The position numbers and the translations under genes are program-made. From Leidyana gryllorum EB-2025a (Eukaryota; Protista; Apicomplexa), in NCBI GenBank assembly GCA_048772705.1, contig JBLWGC010000185.1, positions 1 to 64,000 of the forward strand: a DNA stretch of 64,000 bases, read 5' to 3'. Positions 1-50,493 of the stretch are shown piece after piece (within the stretch, counting starts at the first letter, position 1; each line of letters opens with the position of its first letter). The notes beneath the pieces are model-generated. The model made no database searches. It had not been told where the DNA came from and saw only the letters and a list, made by a program, of their open reading frames with translations.

Positions 1-3000
1 TTGAGGCTCAGAGACCGTCTGTGGCTCTTCGGGTTGTGGACGCTCGACATCAGACTCCTCAGATTGAGGCTCAGAGACAGTCTGTGGCTCTTCGGGTTGA
101 GGACGATCGACATCGGGCTCTTCGGGTTGAGGACGCTCGACATCAGATTCCTCAGATTGAGGCTCAGAGATCAGCAGCGGCTCTTCGGGTTGAGGACGCT
201 CGACATCAGACTCCTCAGATTGAGGCTCAGAGACCGTCTGTGGCTCTTCGGGTTGTGGCTGCTCAACATCGGGCTCTTCGGGTTGAGGACGCTCGACATC
301 AGACTCCTCAGATTGAGGCTCAGAGACAGTCTGTGGCTTCTCGCTGTCAACAGGTTGTGGACGCTCGACATCAGACTCCTCAGATTGAGGCTCAGAGACA
401 GTCTGTGGCTCTTCGGGTTGTGGCTGCTCAACATCGGGCTCTTCGGGTTGAGGACGCTCGACATCAGATTCCTCAGATTGAGGCTCAGAGATCAGCTGTG
501 GCTCTTCGGGTTGAGGACGATCGACATCAGACTCCTCACATTGAGGCTCAGAGACAGTCTGTGGCTCTTCGGGTTGTGGACGCTCGACATCAGACTCCTC
601 AGATTGAGGCTCAGAGACAGTCTGTGGCTTCTCGCTGTCAACAGGTTGTGGACGCTCGACATCAGACTCCTCAGATTGAGGCTCAGAGATCAGCAGCGGC
701 TCTTCGGGTTGAGGACGCTCGACATCAGACTCCTCAGATTGAGGCTCAGAGACAGTCTGTGGCTCTTCGGGTTGTGGCTGCTCAACATCGGGCTCTTCGG
801 GTTGAGGACGCTCGACATCAGACTCCTCAGATTGAGGCTCAGAGACAGTCTGTGGCTTCTCGCTGTCAACAGGTTGTGGACGCTCGACATCAGATTCCTC
901 AGATTGAGGCTCAGAGACAGTCTGTGGCTCTTCGGGTTGTGGACGCTCGACATCAGATTCCTCAGATTGAGGCTCAGAGATCAGCTGTGGCTCTTCGGGT
1001 TGAGGACGATCGACATCGGGCTCTTCGGGTTGAGGACGCTCGACATCAGACTCCTCAGATTGAGGCTCAGAGACAGTCTGTGGCTCTTCGGGTTGAGGAC
1101 GCTCGACATCAGACTCCTCAGATTGAGGCTCAGAGACAGTCTGTGGCTTCTCGCTATCAACAGGTTGTGGCTGCTCGACATCAGATTCCTCAGATTGAGG
1201 CTCAGAGACAGTCTGTGGCTCTTCGGGTTGTGGCTGCTCACTATCGGGCACTTCGGGTTGAGGACGCTCGACATCAGACTCCTCAGATTGAGGCTCAGAG
1301 ACAGTCTGCGGCTTCTCGCTGTCAACAGGTTGTGGACGCTCGACATCAGACTCCTCAGATTGAGGCTCAGAGACAGTCTGTGGCTCTTCGGGTTGTGGAC
1401 GCTCGACATCAGACTCCTCAGATTGAGGCTCAGAGACAGTCTGTGGCTTCTCGCTATCAACAGGTTGTGGACGCTCGACATCAGACTCCTCAGATTGAGG
1501 CTCAGAGACAGTCTGTGGCTTCTCGCTGTCAACAGGTTGTGGCTGCTCGACATCAGACTCCTCAGATTGAGGCTCAGAGACAGTCTGTGGCTCTTCGGGT
1601 TGAGGACGCTCGACATCAGACTCCTCAGATTGAGGCTCAGAGACAGTCTGTGGCTCTTCGGGTTGTGGACGCTCGACATCAGACTCCTCAGATTGAGGCT
1701 CAGAGACAGTCTGTGGCTCTTCGGGTTGTGGACGCTCGACATCAGACTCCTCAGATTGAGGCTCAGAGACAGTCTGTGGCTTCTCGCTGTCAACAGGTTG
1801 TGGACGCTCGACATCAGACTCCTCAGATTGAGGCTCAGAGACAGTCTGTGGCTTCTCGCTGTCAACAGGTTGTGGCTGCTCGACATCAGACTCCTCAGAT
1901 TGAGGCTCAGAGACAGTCTGTGGCTTCTCGCTGTCAACAGGTTGTGGACGCTCGACATCAGATTCCTCAGATTGAGGCTCAGAGACAGTCTGTGGCTCTT
2001 CGGGTTGAGGACGCTCGACATCAGATTCCTCAGATTGAGGCTCAGAGACCGTCTGTGGCTTCTCGCTGTCAACAGGTTGTGGACGCTCGACATCAGACTC
2101 CTCAGATTGAGGCTGAGAGACAGTCTGTGGCTCTTCGGGTTGTGGACGCTCGACATCAGACTCCTCAGATTGAGGCTCAGAGACAGTCTGTGGCTTCTCG
2201 CTGTCAACAGGTTGTGGACGCTCGACATCAGATTCCTCAGATTGAGGCTCAGAGACAGTCTGTGGCTCTTCGGGTTGTGGACGCTCGACATCAGATTCCT
2301 CAGATTGAGGCTCAGAGACAGTCTGTGGCTCTTCGGGTTGAGGACGCTCGACATCAGACTCCTCAGATTGAGGCTCAGAGACAGTCTGTGGCTCTTCGGG
2401 TTGTGGACGCTCGACATCAGACTCCTCAGATTGAGGCTCAGAGACAGTCTGTGGCTTCTCGCTGTCAACAGCTTGTGGGTGCTCGACATCAGATTCCTCA
2501 GATTGAGGCTCAGAGACCGTCTGTGGCTTCTCGCTGTCAACAGGTTGTGGACGCTCGACATCAGACTCCTCAGATTGAGGCTCAGAGACAGTCTGTGGCT
2601 TCTCGCTGTCAACAGGTTGTGGACGCTCGACATCAGATTCCTCAGATTGAGGCTCAGAGACAGTCTGTGGCTTCTCGCTGTCAACAGGTTGTGGACGCTC
2701 GACATCAGACTCCTCAGATTGAGGCTCAGAGACAGTCTGTGGCTTCTCGCTGTCAACAGGTTGTGGACGCTCGACATCAGACTCCTCAGATTGAGGCTCA
2801 GAGACAGTCTGTGGCTCTTCGGGTTGTGGACGCTCGACATCAGACTCCTCAGATTGAGGCTCAGAGACAGTCTGTGGCTTCTCGCTGTCGACGGGTTGTG
2901 GGTGCTCGACATCAGACTCCTCAGATTGAGGCTCAGAGACAGTCTGTGGCTCTTCGGGTTGAGGACGCTCGACATCAGATTCCTCAGATTGAGGCTCAGA

Positions 3001-6000
3001 GACAGTCTGTGGCTCTTCGGGTTGTGGCTGCTCGACATCAGACTCCTCAGATTGAGGCTCAGAGACAGTCTGTGGCTCTTCGGGTTGAGGACGCTCGACA
3101 TCAGACTCCTCAGATTGAGGCTCAGAGACAGTCTGTGGCTCTTCGGGTTGTGGACGCTCGACATCAGACTCCTCAGATTGAGGCTCAGAGACAGTCTGTG
3201 GCTTCTCGCTGTCAACAGGTTGTGGCTGCTCGACATCAGACTCCTCAGATTGAGGCTCAGAGACAGTCTGTGGCTTCTCGCTATCAACAGGTTGTGGACG
3301 CTCGACATCAGACTCCTCAGATTGAGGCTCAGAGACAGTCTGTGGCTTCTCGCTATCAACAGGTTGTGGCTGCTCGACATCAGATTCCTCAGATTGAGGC
3401 TCAGAGACAGTCTGTGGCTCTTCGGGTTGTTGCTCGACATCAGACTCCTCAGATTGAGGCTCAGAGACATCTGTGGCTCTTCGGATTGAGGACGCTCGAC
3501 ATCAGACTCCTCAGATTGAGGCTCAGAGACAGTCTGTGGCTTCTCGCTGTCAACAGGTTGTGGCTGCTCGACATCAGATTCCTCAGATTGAGGCTCAGAG
3601 ACAGTCTGTGGCTCTTCGGGTTGTGGCTGCTCAACATCAGACTCCTCAGATTGAGGCTCAGAGACAGTCTGTGGCTTCTCGCTGTCAACAGGTTGAGGAC
3701 GCTCGACATCAGACTCCTCAGATTGAGGCTCAGAGACAGTCTGTGGCTTCTCGCTGTCAACAGGTTGTGGCTGCTCGACATCAGATTCCTCAGATTGAGG
3801 CTCAGAGACAGTCTGTGGCTCTTCGGGTTGTGGCTGCTCGACATCAGACTCCTCAGATTGAGGCTCAGAGACAGTCTGTGGCTCTTCGGGTTGAGGACGC
3901 TCGACATCAGACTCCTCAGATTGAGGCTCAGAGACAGTCTGTGGCTTCTCGCTGTCAACAGGTTGTGGACGCTCGACATCAGACTCCTCAGATTGAGGCT
4001 CAGAGACAGTCTGTGGCTTCTCGCTGTCAACAGGTTGTGGCTGCTCGACATCAGACTCCTCAGATTGAGGCTCAGAGACAGTCTGTGGCTTCTCGCTGTC
4101 AACAGGTTGTGGCTGCTCGACATCAGACTCCTCAGATTGAGGCTCAGAGACAGTCTGTGGCTCTTCGGGTTGAGGACGCTCGACATCAGATTCCTCAGAT
4201 TGAGGCTCAGAGACAGTCTGTGGCTCTTCGGGTTGTGGCTGCTCAACATCGGGCTCTTCGGGTTGAGGACGCTCGACATCAGACTCCTCAGATCGAGGCT
4301 CAGAGACAGTCTGTGGCTTCTCGCTATCAACAGGTTGTGGACGCTCGACATCAGACTCCTCAGATTGAGGCTCAGAGACAGTCTGTGGCTCTTCGGGTTG
4401 AGGACGCTCGACATCAGACTCCTCAGATTGAGGCTCAGAGACAGTCTGTGGCTTCTCGCTGTCAACAGGTTGTGGACGCTCGACATCAGATTCCTCAGAT
4501 TGAGGCTCAGAGACAGTCTGTGGCTCTTCGGGTTGTGGACGCTCGACATCAGATTCCTCAGATTGAGGCTCAGAGACAGTCTGTGGCTCTTCGGGTTGTG
4601 GACGCTCGACATCAGACTCCTCAGATTGAGGCTCAGAGACAGTCTGTGGCTTCTCGCTGTCAACAGGTTGTGGCTGCTCGACATCAGACTCCTCAGATTG
4701 AGGCTCAGAGACAGTCTGTGGCTTCTCGCTGTCGACGGGTTGTGGGTGCTCGACATCAGACTCCTCAGATTGAGGCTCAGAGATCAGCTGTGGCTCTTCG
4801 GGTTGTGGACGCTCGACATCAGACTCCTCAGATTGAGGCTCAGAGACAGTCTGTGGCTTCTCGCTGTCAACAGGTTGTGGCTGCTCGACATCAGACTCCT
4901 CAGATTGAGGCTCAGAGACAGTCTGTGGCTTCTCGCTATCAACAGGTTGTGGACGCTCGACATCAGACTCCTCAGATTGAGGCTCAGAGATCAGCTGTGG
5001 CTCTTCGGGTTTGGGACGCTCGACATCAGACTCCTCAGATTGAGGCTCAGAGACAGTCTGTGGCTTCTCGCTGTCAACAGGTTGTGGACGCTCGACATCA
5101 GACTCCTCAGATTGAGGCTCAGAGACAGTCTGTGGCTCTTCGGGTTGTGGACGCTCGACATCAGACTCCTCAGATTGAGGCTCAGAGATCAGCTGTGGCT
5201 CTTCGGGTTGTGGACGCTCGACATCAGACTCCTCAGATTGAGGCTCAGAGATCAGCTGTGGCTCTTCGGGTTTGGGACGCTCGACATCAGATTCCTCAGA
5301 TTGAGGCTCAGAGATCAGCTGTGGCTCTTCGGGTTGAGGACGCTCGACATCAGACTCCTCAGATTGAGGCTCAGAGACAGTCTGTGGCTTCTCGCTGTCA
5401 ACAGGTTGTGGACGCTCGACATCAGACTCCTCAGATTGAGGCTCAGAGACAGTCTGTGGCTCTTCGGGTTGTGGACGCTCGACATCAGACTCCTCAGATT
5501 GAGGCTCAGAGATCAGCTGTGGCTCTTCGGGTTGTGGACGCTCGACATCAGACTCCTCAGATTGAGGCTCAGAGACAGTCTGTGGCTTCTCGCTGTCAAC
5601 AGGTTGTGGACGCTCGACATCAGACTCCTCAGATTGAGGCTCAGAGATCAGCTGTGGCTCTTCGGGTTGTGGACGCTCGACATCAGACTCCTCAGATTGA
5701 GGCTCAGAGACAGTCTGTGGCTCTTCGGGTTGTGGACGCTCGACATCAGACTCCTCAGATTGAGGCTCAGAGACAGTCTGTGGCTTCTCGCTGTCAACAG
5801 GTTGTGGACGCTCGACATCAGACTCCTCAGATTGAGGCTCAGAGACAGTCTGTGGCTCTTCGGGTTGAGGACGCTCGACATCAGATTCCTCAGATTGAGG
5901 CTCAGAGACAGTCTGTGGCTCTTCGGGTTGTGGACGCTCGACATCAGACTCCTCAGATTGAGGCTCAGAGACAGTCTGTGGCTTCTCGCTTTCAACAGGT

Positions 6001-45912: not shown

Positions 45913-47506
45913 TTATCTAGTACGGCTCTGCAGGGTGTGCACGAGTGCGTGTGTACGGAAAATGAGGTCTCTGGTCTTGTCCAATATCTGCGCGTGGCAG
46001 TTTGACACGTGCGACGCCATTTCCACAATGTTTTTCTCCGAGTCAATCTTGGCATCTGAATGCCGAGAAATGTGTGCGTGAACCCACAACTTGATATATT
46101 GTAACTTACCCAACTTTGCATCCCGGATGAGGTTCACAATCCACTTTTCGGCTTTGTCCGCGGGCATGTGGAGTTTGTCAGAGAGCATACTGTGTGGGAA
46201 AGGAGTGATAGAAGGGGGGTGGTGGAAGAGTGACTCACTTTATGTTGATAGAACGATGGATGCGGCAGTAGTTGTCGAACACCAGGAGACGGGCCTGTTC
46301 CTCGATCTCATCGGCCAGATCAACGAGGAAGAAGTCTTTGCGGCAGAGATCGGCGATGACTGGGAGCTCAACTTGGCTTTGGTCAAAGTTGCAATCGATG
46401 AAGGAGGATGTAACGAGACGCGTGATGGCATCTTGGTAGCGGTGGGCCCCATTGGAGACGGCCTGGGCGGCGATACGGGCCTGATCCTCGCGTTTGCGGT
46501 TGAGAATGGCGACTACGGCGTAGTAACGGAGCAGATGGGGGCAGACGACGGCGATGCACTGCTGCGCTTTCTCACTCAGGAACCAATCCATAATTTCTGA
46601 CCACACCGTGTTGCGCGGGACGGCTTGACGGCCGGAGGCAGCCAGCGTGCCGAAGAAGAAGCGGAAAATGACCCAGAGAGCCCAGTGAAGGAGCCAAGCG
46701 GTCTGGAGCAGATTGCGTTTCTCGCCAGCCAGACGGGTCTGGTTACCGTTGGGGCCGGTATTGGAAGAGCGTTGGTCGTCGTAGAGCTCATCCAACTGGA
46801 GGATGTATTGGGGAACGGTGCTAAAGTCGATGCCGGACTCGTTGACGTCGGGTCTGAGTTCCATACAGGCGGCCAATATGACACCCCACAGGAACTCCTC
46901 GCGGGCGTTTTCGTCCTGGGCGGCTTCGGTGACAACGTCACAGATGCATTCGAGACAGAAACGGGAGCGGAAGAAGAGAGCTCTGTAGTCTCCGGCCCGG
47001 TAGTATGCGCGGATGTAAGGGACCATTTCGCCCACAGTCTGGGCGCTGAAGGGCTCGTAGGCGAGGAGCGCCTGATCGACCTGAGCGCGTTCTTCACTGG
47101 TGCACTGTTCTCTGGCGGCTCTCAGTTCTTCGGCCTTTCGCTGCCATTGGGCGTTGAGCTCGGCGGCGCTTCTGCGGTCACTGCGTCCCTCAGCAGTGTT
47201 CATCAACTCTTTTTTGTGTTCCAAGAGGCACTGGAAGAAAGAGGTGTGCTTTCTCTCGAGAGTGGAATAGAGCTGCTGCTGCACCGCTTCGTATGCAGAA
47301 GCGTCTCGGCTTCGTGGGACATCGAGTTCGTCGAACGCCCAGCCCAACTTGAGAGAATCACGGAGTTGCTGTAAGGGTTCGTCAATGTCATCGGGAGCAT
47401 AGACTCCTTGTTTCTTGCACCATGTCAGAATGGCTAATGCCTGATGTGGGTCCACAAACTTGAGGACCGCTGAGGTCACATCCACCGCCTCGCTCCCGGA
47501 GGCCAT
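45913..47506 (-). CDS. EIF3E: Translation initiation factor eIF3 subunit E (PCI domain); 3 exons
   Basis: WLLHWALWVIF, CPHLLRYY, DFFL...EQARLLVFDNYCRIH, AEKWIVNLIRDAKL|DAKID. Confidence 0.92.
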
Positions 47507-47683: not shown

Positions 47684-50493
47684 ATGCAACGCACTGCTGT
47701 TCCTGGCGGCTATGAGCAGACAGCCACACAGGCCATTACTCCAGAACCCCTCGAACGACTCAAACTCATTCAAGATGACACATCCAAAGTACCCGATGGA
47801 GTTCCGCTCGACTTGCGAGCCGAACCCCTCATATCCGCCCCTCCCCCTACATTGAGACTCAAAGGCAATTACCCCCCGCCCACTCCGGCAGCCGACGGAC
47901 CGAAATCAGCCGCCGCTGACGAACACACTTTGACTGTGACCACACCCGAGGAGGATCCCAGTACCCCCAGCACCTCGATGGGGACTCCCACTGTTTTGGT
48001 TCTCCGCGGCGGCAGCGGTCCGAGCAAAGAGGACGAAGAGGAAGTGGTCCAAGACGATTACATTGAGCGCCGCGGTCAAAGTGGAGGACGCCGTTGGGGA
48101 GAGAAACAGTCGAGAGACGGCCGCTGGTCTGAGAAATGGATGACTCAATCGGTGTCAGCCACTGAGGAAATTGGAAAGTCGAGCGGAACAGAGGACCGTC
48201 GCACGTGGGATCAGCAATGGAGACGTACGGGTGATATCGTTCGAGTTACCAAAGTCGTTCAAGAACACACGCCTCCCGCTGCAGGAGGCGTATTGGAACA
48301 GAAATGGTACGAACGGACACTCGTCGACGAGAAGAAGGGAACCATTGAAGAACTAAAGTACGGCACAGATCACACCGGAGCACAGGAACGCCGATGGCAA
48401 CTCAAATCGACCTATTCTATATCCCCACACCGTGACAAAGGTGAGAGCGAAGCAGACAACTTCCCCCCCTTTGGGTTCCAACTCCCCCGCCCTCCCCAAA
48501 TGCTGCGTTTCTCGTTGCAGAGCTGACAGAGTCGACGTTCGAGGAGACAATGGGATCGCGAGTGAGTACTCGGTATATTCGTGTGCTGGAGACGGGAGAA
48601 CGTCGGGGGCTGAATACGTTTGAGGATCGGGACGGCGGCCGGGAGCGATGGAGAGACGAATGGAGCGAAGCGGTTACGGGTGAGAAGAAAGGACGCAAGA
48701 CGGGACTGAATAGCCGCGGAGAAGAGTGGTCTGAGGAGTGGTCCGAGTTTGGGGAAGAGCGCAGTATGAGACGGTGGAAGAAGTCGGCGTGTGGAAAGTA
48801 CAGTTGGGGATTTAACGAAGAAACTCTGCGCGCGGGCGACGGTGTCCTCGAAGAGTCCAAAGAGAGGTGGGAGCGTCAGTACCATCCGGAAGCCGACGGA
48901 GTGTGGGTCGAGGAAGAGTTGGCCGACAAATGGTGGACACGGCCCGAGTCGAGTTGGGGAGAGAAAGCCAAAAGTGTCACCCGCTACAGAGTTGCGGGCG
49001 ACAACCCCACGTCGCAGGAAGATCGAACGCTCGTCCGAACCACAGAGATCAGAGAGAAATGGTACGACAATCATCACGAAAAGAAAGTCGACGTCTGGAG
49101 CACGACAAACGACTATAACGAGGACGGCAAACTCCGAACGGTAAGATGCAGCGGCAGCACAGGACTCACAATGTATTCCACTTCTGACAGAGCAAAGAGG
49201 GCCGAATTGATGGAGAGTCTTATGAAACCGGTATCAAATGGGGAGAACGGTGGGGAGAAGAGATCAGCGAGGATTGCCAACCGATCGTACGCCACGACGA
49301 CAAATGGTGGCTGGAAAGCAGCGGTAACGGCTGGGGAGAGAAGACCTATAAAGACCTCCGGGCGTCTCGACGATACGAAGAAAAGTGGTATCGAAACCAA
49401 AACGGCGAGTCGCAGGTCGACCGCTGGACCACTGAGGCCGACGGAAGTCAGTCGGGATCAAAGGAGGGCTCCCGCTGGGACCCTCAGGAAGAACTCACCG
49501 TCACCTGGAAAGAGCAGTGGGGACAACGCCAAGGCGAAGAACGATGGATCGAGAAGTCCTGGCACACAGCCCGCGGCGGCATCGTAAGTTGGCGAGTCTG
49601 AGTGTCCCTGTGTCTGTGTGTCCCTGTGTCTGTGTGTCTGTGTGTCCCTGTGTCTGTGTGTCTGTGTGTCCCTGTGTCTGTGTGTCCCTGTTTCTCAACC
49701 CCCCACCCCCCCTGGTGAATCTAAGTGTCTCTCTGTGCCTTTTGTAGGAGACGAGCGCGTGGGGCGAGAAGGAGGGTACGCGAGGGCGAACAAAGTGGTT
49801 TGAGAAGTGGCGGAAGGATGAGAGTGAGGAGAGTCAGGAGAAGTTTAACGACGACGGTTTTGGGAATTATGTGGTTGAGAAGAGTGGCTGCAAGAAGCGC
49901 GATGGCGCTGTGGTGGATTGGTTTGTGAACCGATCTGGTGAGTCTTTGGGTAAAGGAGAAAAGTGGGCGTTCAATGAGGGCGCCGACGCGGAGTCGAACG
50001 AGTGGTTGGAGAAGTGGAACGAGACCCGAGAGCATAAGAGTGCTGAGAAACGGGCCCGAAACCGGCGAGGCGATGTCTGGGAAGAAGTTTGGGCCGAAGA
50101 CTTTGCGAGCGACGGGGCCAAGTGTCGCACTTGGGCCGCCAAGACGGGTTCGAATGCTCAGGGAGAGAGTTGGTTCGAGGAGTGGTACGAAACAGACAAT
50201 GAGAAACGCACCAAGAAGAGAGGCAAACGTGGAGACGAGGAATGGTTCGAGGAGTGGGGCGAAGAAGAATTCGATGACGGCCAAGGTGACTTTGCTGAGT
50301 CTCTTTGAGATGTGGTCATTGCATTGTAGGCGGGTTGAAGTGGACATCCAAATGGGCATCCGACGCTCGAGGTCGATGGGGTCAGAGCTGGGGGGATAGA
50401 TGGAACAAGGACGGCGGACACAGATGGGGTGAAGTGTGGGATGAAAAGGGCGTCAAAAAGTGGGCCCACGATACACAAGGTGGCCCTCCTTGA
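47684..50493 (+). CDS. Tryptophan-rich repeat protein, ESV1/LESV-like (823 aa, 5 exons)
   Basis: Exons 47684-48440, 48521-49140, 49191-49583, 49748-50285 and 50330-50493 sum to 2472 nt in frame. Repeated W-x-E-x-W and K-W motifs cover about 690 aa. The C-terminus resembles the ESV1/LESV W-rich domain. Confidence 0.75.
49601..49691. repeat. 24-bp GT-rich minisatellite (~3.5 copies) inside intron 3 of the W-rich gene
   Basis: gtgtccctgtgtctgtgtgtctgt repeated. Confidence 0.9.

Follow-up and report, generated by a model that had tools for sequence, protein, structure and literature searches.

Results

A five-exon gene encodes a Trp-rich protein of 823 residues

The stretch of DNA analyzed here, hereafter called the window, corresponds to positions 1 to 64,000 of the forward strand of contig JBLWGC010000185.1 from the apicomplexan Leidyana gryllorum EB-2025a. 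It contains on the + strand an ESV/LESV gene (47684-50493), flanked by housekeeping genes and composed of five exons and four introns, the latter all GT..AG. The exons total 2472 nt, that is, 823 aa and a stop, with zero internal stops. The features of this gene are as follows.

47684-48440 (+): exon 1, aa 1-252; acidic Pro-rich N terminus, predicted Trp-rich sheet starting at ~aa 125
47843-47860 (+): P-P-T-L-R-L motif (aa 54-59), corresponding to P-[IV]-L-[RK]-L of other homologues
47987-48004 (+): weaker second copy of this type of motif
48441-48520 (+): intron 1, 80 nt, GT..AG
48521-49140 (+): exon 2, aa 253-459; predicted sheet extension
49141-49190 (+): intron 2, 50 nt, GT..AG; the frame shifts across it
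49191-49583 (+): exon 3, aa 460-590; predicted sheet extension, conserved in myzozoans
49584-49747 (+): intron 3, 164 nt, GT..AG
49748-50285 (+): exon 4, aa 591-769; ESV/LESV core, modeled as 13 antiparallel strands
50286-50329 (+): intron 4, 44 nt, GT..AG
50330-50493 (+): exon 5, aa 770-823 and stop; predicted final strands of the core

This splice structure is deduced from homology. A profile of 18 homologues, from which the window's own sequence was left out, was searched against the genome and matched all five exons in order, over model positions 53-782 of 784 (53-216, 194-405, 378-542, 543-727, and 727-782 for exons 1 to 5, respectively). The locus is the sole one matched in the 15.5-Mb genome, and the gene is single copy. 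When exons were compared one by one using BLAST, each aligned where expected within the full-length homologues, exon 2 matching the Toxoplasma orthologue with an E value of 7e-15 and exon 5 being 56-62% identical to its orthologous counterparts. The spliced Trp-rich protein proposed in the first-pass annotation, which was made from the sequence alone, therefore stands, its exon order being backed by a profile to which it did not contribute. Intron 1 may instead end 9 nt further on, at an alternative in-frame acceptor (48529), in which case the protein would be 3 aa shorter. Within intron 3, a tandem repeat with a unit of 16 nt (6.2 copies) occupies positions 49596-49695. Sequence and fold analyses of the window protein were all performed exon by exon.

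Immediately downstream, a proteasome beta gene is found ~65 nt past the ESV/LESV stop. The same gene comes next to an orthologue (105-3448) in Logan contig SRR10829746, where it starts 30 nt after the stop and where both genes are uninterrupted; this contig represents either a genome with few introns or a transcript reading through both genes. On the other side, a gene on the - strand (46235-47506, with more exons to ~45900) is transcribed away from the ESV gene, the two starts being separated by 177 nt that contain an (AG)23 tract. A Pfam search of this upstream gene returned no match; we take it to resemble eIF3e.

The window gene belongs to the ESV1/LESV family by sequence

When exon 4 was searched with phmmer against 1.84 billion representative proteins, 26 matches were found at E ≤ 1e-3, 16 of which at E ≤ 1e-10 (identities of ~35-46%), the best reaching ~1e-26. 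The named matches within Apicomplexa are from Toxoplasma, Hammondia, Eimeria, Cyclospora, several Cryptosporidium species, Cardiosporidium, Rhytidocystis, and the gregarines Ancora, Selenidium, and Porospora. Chromerids are represented by Chromera and Vitrella, an MMETSP transcript also matches, as does, with an E value of 8e-4, Cyanophora, a glaucophyte. Two entries of the hit list, P0020 and P0022, appear to be repetitive proteins without kinship to the others, and we left them out of the homologue set. The orthologues include Toxoplasma TGME49_206640 (“putative at hook motif protein”), Cryptosporidium cgd7_2820, Chromera Cvel_11216, and Vitrella CEM15615. The “AT hook” name of TGME49_206640 has no Pfam support, and our guess is that it stems from a G-R-P tripeptide at the conserved C terminus of this protein.

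All the Pfam 38 records that were readable for orthologues list PF28232 (LESV) and no other domain. As for the exons themselves, a Pfam scan returned no family at E ≤ 1 because the PF28232 model was missing from the Pfam copy used, and a PDB sequence search gave no match. There is thus no enzyme or known CBM domain on the exons as judged by Pfam and PDB sequences, and only PF28232 on the orthologues, which indicates a non-catalytic protein. The match survives control for composition, as exon 4 scored 156 bits on the homologue-only profile, while its shuffles scored ≤-2.9 and its reversed sequence 16. Exons 2, 3, and 5 likewise scored above their own shuffles. Against Cyanophora alone, exon 4 scored 49.7 bits (shuffles ≤23.5), with exons 3, 4, and 5 above their shuffles and exons 1 and 2 not clearly so.

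Plant ESV1 and LESV were not among the exon-4 phmmer results at E ≤ 1e-3, and the link to plants is therefore made via the Pfam labels of the orthologues, the structural match described below, and a comparison by eye. In this comparison, the end of the protein had been lined up in the first-pass annotation with a quoted plant ESV1 segment. That segment is real, standing in Data S1a of PMC10219597, and 19 of 45 columns are identical by eye in the window protein, with all six Trp aligned. A language-model feature search, which we treat only as a lead owing to its low recognition score, ranked LESV clusters in the top three positions for exon 4 (best 0.91, 197 shared features) and placed an LESV cluster first, weakly (0.77), for exon 2. 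On this indirect evidence, we place the window gene in the ESV1/LESV family (PF28232), as had been proposed. We place it in neither the plant ESV1 nor the plant LESV subfamily. A tree based on exon 4 has an unresolved backbone.

A gene of this family is also annotated as a fly gene, LOC129617018 of Condylostylus longicornis (GCA_029603195.2), whose product is 48% identical to exon 4. The 26-kb contig that carries it, JAQSLO010000363.1, is probably from an apicomplexan contaminant or parasite in the assembly.

Aromatic residues show a spacing that would fit two stripes on a β-sheet

The window protein starts with an acidic region of 137 residues containing 14% Pro, and its 54 Trp are all found between residues 138 and 814, with Glu accounting for 15-18% of exons 2-4. 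As previously proposed, there is no evident signal peptide, nor is there an evident membrane segment in any exon as judged by hydropathy, the best 12-residue value in the first 45 aa being 0.09 and no 19-residue window exceeding 0.32 in any exon. Pairs of aromatics at i,i+4 are overrepresented (20 observed vs. 9.3 expected, with none of 1000 shuffles having as many), and 15 of the 20 have D/E at their center, while spacings of 2, 6, and 7 are rarer than expected. In a β-strand, residues i and i+4 are on the same side, ~14 Å apart, with i+2 in between. Such pairs with a central acid would thus, on a strand, generate the arrangement described for ESV1 and LESV, which is two aromatic stripes 14 Å apart with acids between them (PMC10219597).

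This pattern is uneven along the protein. While the Trp-rich region of ~690 aa announced in the first-pass annotation is real, its regular W-x-E-x-W repeats are not uniform, since the strict motif occurs only 10 times, 5 of which are in exon 4. When counted in six orthologues from myzozoans, i,i+4 pairs number 11-16 in the final third of the Trp-rich region and 3-8 in each of the other two; aromatic pairs are approximately half as dense in the sheet extension as in the C-terminal third. The core profile matches this N-terminal extension weakly (9-21 bits), which suggests that the extension may have grown by an old internal duplication.

Upstream of the Trp-rich region, the P-P-T-L-R-L motif has counterparts in many relatives. 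P-[IV]-L-[RK]-L is found in the N terminus of 12 of 22 other myzozoan homologues (with a shuffle frequency of 0-0.05 for each) and is absent from the five Cryptosporidium proteins and from Cyanophora. We found no description in the literature of this recurrent myzozoan P-[IV]-L-R-L motif, which is seemingly new, and we would guess that it is a docking site for a partner enzyme.

The predicted sheet is approximately threefold longer than in plants

Exon 4 was modeled as 13 consecutive antiparallel strands with high confidence (pLDDT 96.5, pTM 0.84), in line with the single antiparallel sheet that had been anticipated. In the ESM Atlas, the best named match to this model is a chlorophyte LESV cluster, with a TM score of 0.83 and an rmsd of 1.9 Å over 162 residues. 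Since an unnamed cluster reached 0.81 and unrelated β-meanders 0.60-0.75, the fold alone is weak evidence of kinship. Searches of the PDB with the fold returned generic β-meanders only, the best being ApoB100 (TM 0.25), with porins at Z ≤ 11.5 and rmsd of 5-10 Å. The unnamed ESM Atlas cluster with a TM score of 0.81 (515 aa, 60 members) also resembles exon 4 in its language-model features (0.78), and it possibly corresponds to further unlabeled ESV-like proteins.

For the full-length fold, a database orthologue from the gregarine Ancora (789 aa) stood in for the window protein. Its model (mean pLDDT 83, pTM 0.52) consists of disordered residues 1-75 followed by 49 strands over residues 77-781, with no helix of ≥4 residues. 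By comparison, the sheet in plant ESV1 and LESV has 16 strands and measures ~70 Å (PMC10219597), and the roughly threefold longer sheet of the first-pass annotation is thus in agreement with the orthologue model. If extended, a 49-strand sheet would measure 21-24 nm, its curvature being left unfixed by a pTM of 0.52. The Trp-rich region spans about 530-870 aa in full-length alveolate members, and the long sheet is the usual myzozoan form rather than a peculiarity of this genome. In plants, helices or loops cover one face of the sheet (10.1101/2023.06.09.544376), whereas the alveolate model has no helices, and both faces may therefore be free. We found no description in the literature of such a predicted 49-strand sheet devoid of the plant capping helices, which is seemingly new.

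Set against known members of the family, the window gene differs from the alveolate ones (TGME49_206640, cgd7_2820, Cvel_11216, CEM15615) only as a further species, since its five exons align with them in order and it shares with them a long Trp-rich region, single copy, and the same genomic pathway context. With Arabidopsis ESV1 (At1g42430) and LESV (At3g55760), it is predicted to share a Trp/acid-rich single-layer antiparallel sheet and the register of the core. However, the plant sheet has 16 strands and not ~49 as in the Ancora model, and there are two genes in plants and one in the window genome. Plant proteins also have a plastid transit peptide, which the window protein lacks, its N terminus being acidic. 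The Pro-rich part is N-terminal in the window protein, whereas it forms a tail in plant ESV1. The window protein stops 33 aa past the matched ESV1 segment. In soybean ESV1, the segment is followed by ~118 aa comprising a conserved helix, ahead of which the window protein ends, and then a tail rich in Pro. The conserved N-terminal α-helices of plant LESV have no counterpart in the Ancora model. As for Cyanophora paradoxa tig00000863_g5010, a glaucophyte protein with PF28232 from a lineage with cytosolic starch, its core is homologous (37.5% identity to exon 4 over 136 aa) and its C terminus is in register with those of the alveolate proteins. Its Trp-rich region (~360 aa) is intermediate between those of plants and myzozoans, and P-[IV]-L-R-L is missing.

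The gene co-occurs with amylopectin metabolism

As expected for a candidate amylopectin-related gene, the same genome encodes an α-glucan water dikinase (GWD) on contig C104 (PF23166, PF22973, PF01326), a GT5 glucan (starch) synthase on C35, a GlgB-type branching enzyme (BE1) on C230, a CBM48-GH13-GT4 protein (BE2/GT4 fusion) on C180, and phosphorylase. BE1 and the BE2/GT4 fusion are described in the literature as myzozoan hallmarks of starch synthesis. Phosphorylase matched at two places with an equal score of 977.7 bits (C159:229352-231544 and C102:23497-25683), and the two may stem from a recent duplication or be haplotypes that were assembled separately. At C12:38009-39457, there is another nucleotide-binding domain of the dikinase type (PF01326), with no GWD N-terminal match in the frames tested, and could belong to a PWD-like enzyme or PPDK.

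The named carriers are all from lineages that store starch or amylopectin. The absence of Plasmodium and piroplasm proteins from the exon-4 phmmer results is weak evidence since the same search also missed the plant members; loss of storage polysaccharide has been reported for Plasmodium, which fits the missing match in this genus. According to an October 2026 preprint (10.64898/2026.09.25.754361), which gives the phylogeny and distribution of ESV/LESV, the family is present in Apicomplexa, chromerids, dinoflagellates, and ciliates (its Figs. 2F and S6) and tracks GWD and amylopectin in ciliates. The same source reports that red algae make starch without ESV/LESV, and the protein thus need not be essential. 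The words “tryptophan,” “AlphaFold,” and “gregarin” do not occur in its main text, where neither structure nor the length of the sheet is discussed. The claim of a family member outside the green lineage therefore holds for this genome, but its novelty does not, since the preprint had reported such members and Pfam 38 labels them PF28232.

In the literature, we found no binding, localization, or mutant data for any alveolate member, and no mention of TGME49_206640, cgd7_2820, or Cvel_11216 in main texts. TGME49_206640 has been detected as a protein and phosphoprotein, appearing in proteomic tables only (PMC9729606 supplements). Its 0.28-fold level in a pp2a-c mutant is not specific, as 1146 proteins fell >1.5-fold (PMC9729606).

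Discussion

We estimate at roughly 0.78 the probability that this gene encodes a cytosolic, non-catalytic amylopectin-granule organizer of the ESV/LESV family, single copy and of the long myzozoan type. Amylopectin binding, location on granules, and a role in seeding or stabilizing them are properties that we infer by transfer from plant ESV1 and LESV, whose function is described in PMC10219597 and 10.1101/2023.06.09.544376. In the mechanism that we propose, a disordered N terminus would be followed by one continuous single-layer antiparallel sheet of ~49 strands, in which i,i+4 aromatics on the same face, ~14 Å apart, would line up across strands to form two stripes, with one double helix of amylopectin bound along each. 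In cytosolic amylopectin granules, the protein would seed the semi-crystalline state or stabilize it, and would limit access of GWD and hydrolases. The C-terminal third would be the strong binding surface. The extension would probably serve as a spacer or as an additional, weaker surface for glucan, while a partner enzyme may dock at the N-terminal motif.

That the likeness to ESV1 merely reflects composition bias, in a convergent Trp/Glu-rich β-hairpin repeat (MORN-like or a Plasmodium-type Trp-rich antigen) or an AT-hook DNA-binding protein, seems to us extremely improbable. The blank Pfam scan of the exons, which might have spoken for it, is explained by a Pfam copy without PF28232, and while some orthologues are listed in databases as “at hook motif protein” or “Tryptophan-rich antigen” and MORN-type axonemal proteins appear at Z ~8 in the fold search, no MORN, AT-hook, or Trp-antigen family is found on any exon or on the Toxoplasma protein. 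Furthermore, shuffled and reversed controls fail, and the register with plant ESV1 is specific. A true homologue could instead have lost its amylopectin role and been repurposed as a structural or protein-binding scaffold, for example in the oocyst or cyst wall or with another polysaccharide. Two thirds of the sheet having about half the i,i+4 aromatic-pair density would be consistent with this, as would the fact that long single-layer sheets elsewhere are belts and scaffolds, such as ApoB100, the best PDB match. However, the aromatic core is the most strongly conserved part, the named carriers are all from starch- or amylopectin-storing lineages, and there is no signal peptide for export to a wall, which leads us to regard repurposing as very unlikely.

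Closer to our own reading, the protein could bind granules and act solely in degradation, by shielding their surface or by providing GWD, a laforin-type phosphatase, or CDPK2-regulated enzymes with a platform, being ESV1-like rather than LESV-like and playing no part in seeding crystallinity. Several observations point in this direction: the LESV N-terminal helices are missing from the Ancora model, the conserved N-terminal motif suggests a partner, and plant ESV1 is a stabilizer, with ESV1 and LESV both affecting dikinases and phosphatases according to PMC10219597 and 10.64898/2026.09.25.754361. In the latter, granule aggregation in Chromera is reported to need phosphorylase and an indirect debranching enzyme. 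Nevertheless, the shared sheet is the element credited with aligning helices in plant ESV1 and LESV alike, and a role restricted to degradation, which we consider unlikely, overlaps with the organizer that we favor, since this allows for stabilizing. A bolder version of this organizer, which we put forward as speculative and rather unlikely, is a molecular ruler or spine, with the ~49-strand sheet registering successive amylopectin lamellae to produce protein-templated crystalline granules. The lamellar repeat of amylopectin is ~9 nm. A sheet of 21-24 nm, if extended, would cross two or more such repeats, its helix-free faces would both bind amylopectin helices, and recruitment or regulation would occur via the N-terminal P-[IV]-L-R-L motif.

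In Toxoplasma, Eimeria, Cryptosporidium, and gregarines, resting and transmission stages draw on amylopectin granules as fuel. Past work on how this cytosolic glucan turns semi-crystalline has dealt with enzymes and their regulators. The surprise is lessened by the presence of the family in Apicomplexa already being on record, in Pfam and in the above preprint (10.64898/2026.09.25.754361), and the finding is less surprising than it appeared in the first-pass annotation. Still, the gene is a named, testable candidate for granule crystallization, and TGME49_206640, cgd7_2820, and Cvel_11216, labeled as AT-hook or hypothetical proteins, are single-copy non-catalytic candidates in tractable species. 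With its predicted threefold longer sheet, the myzozoan protein would also provide a test of the model for plants, according to which the sheet, at 7 nm, would be about as long as a single crystalline lamella.
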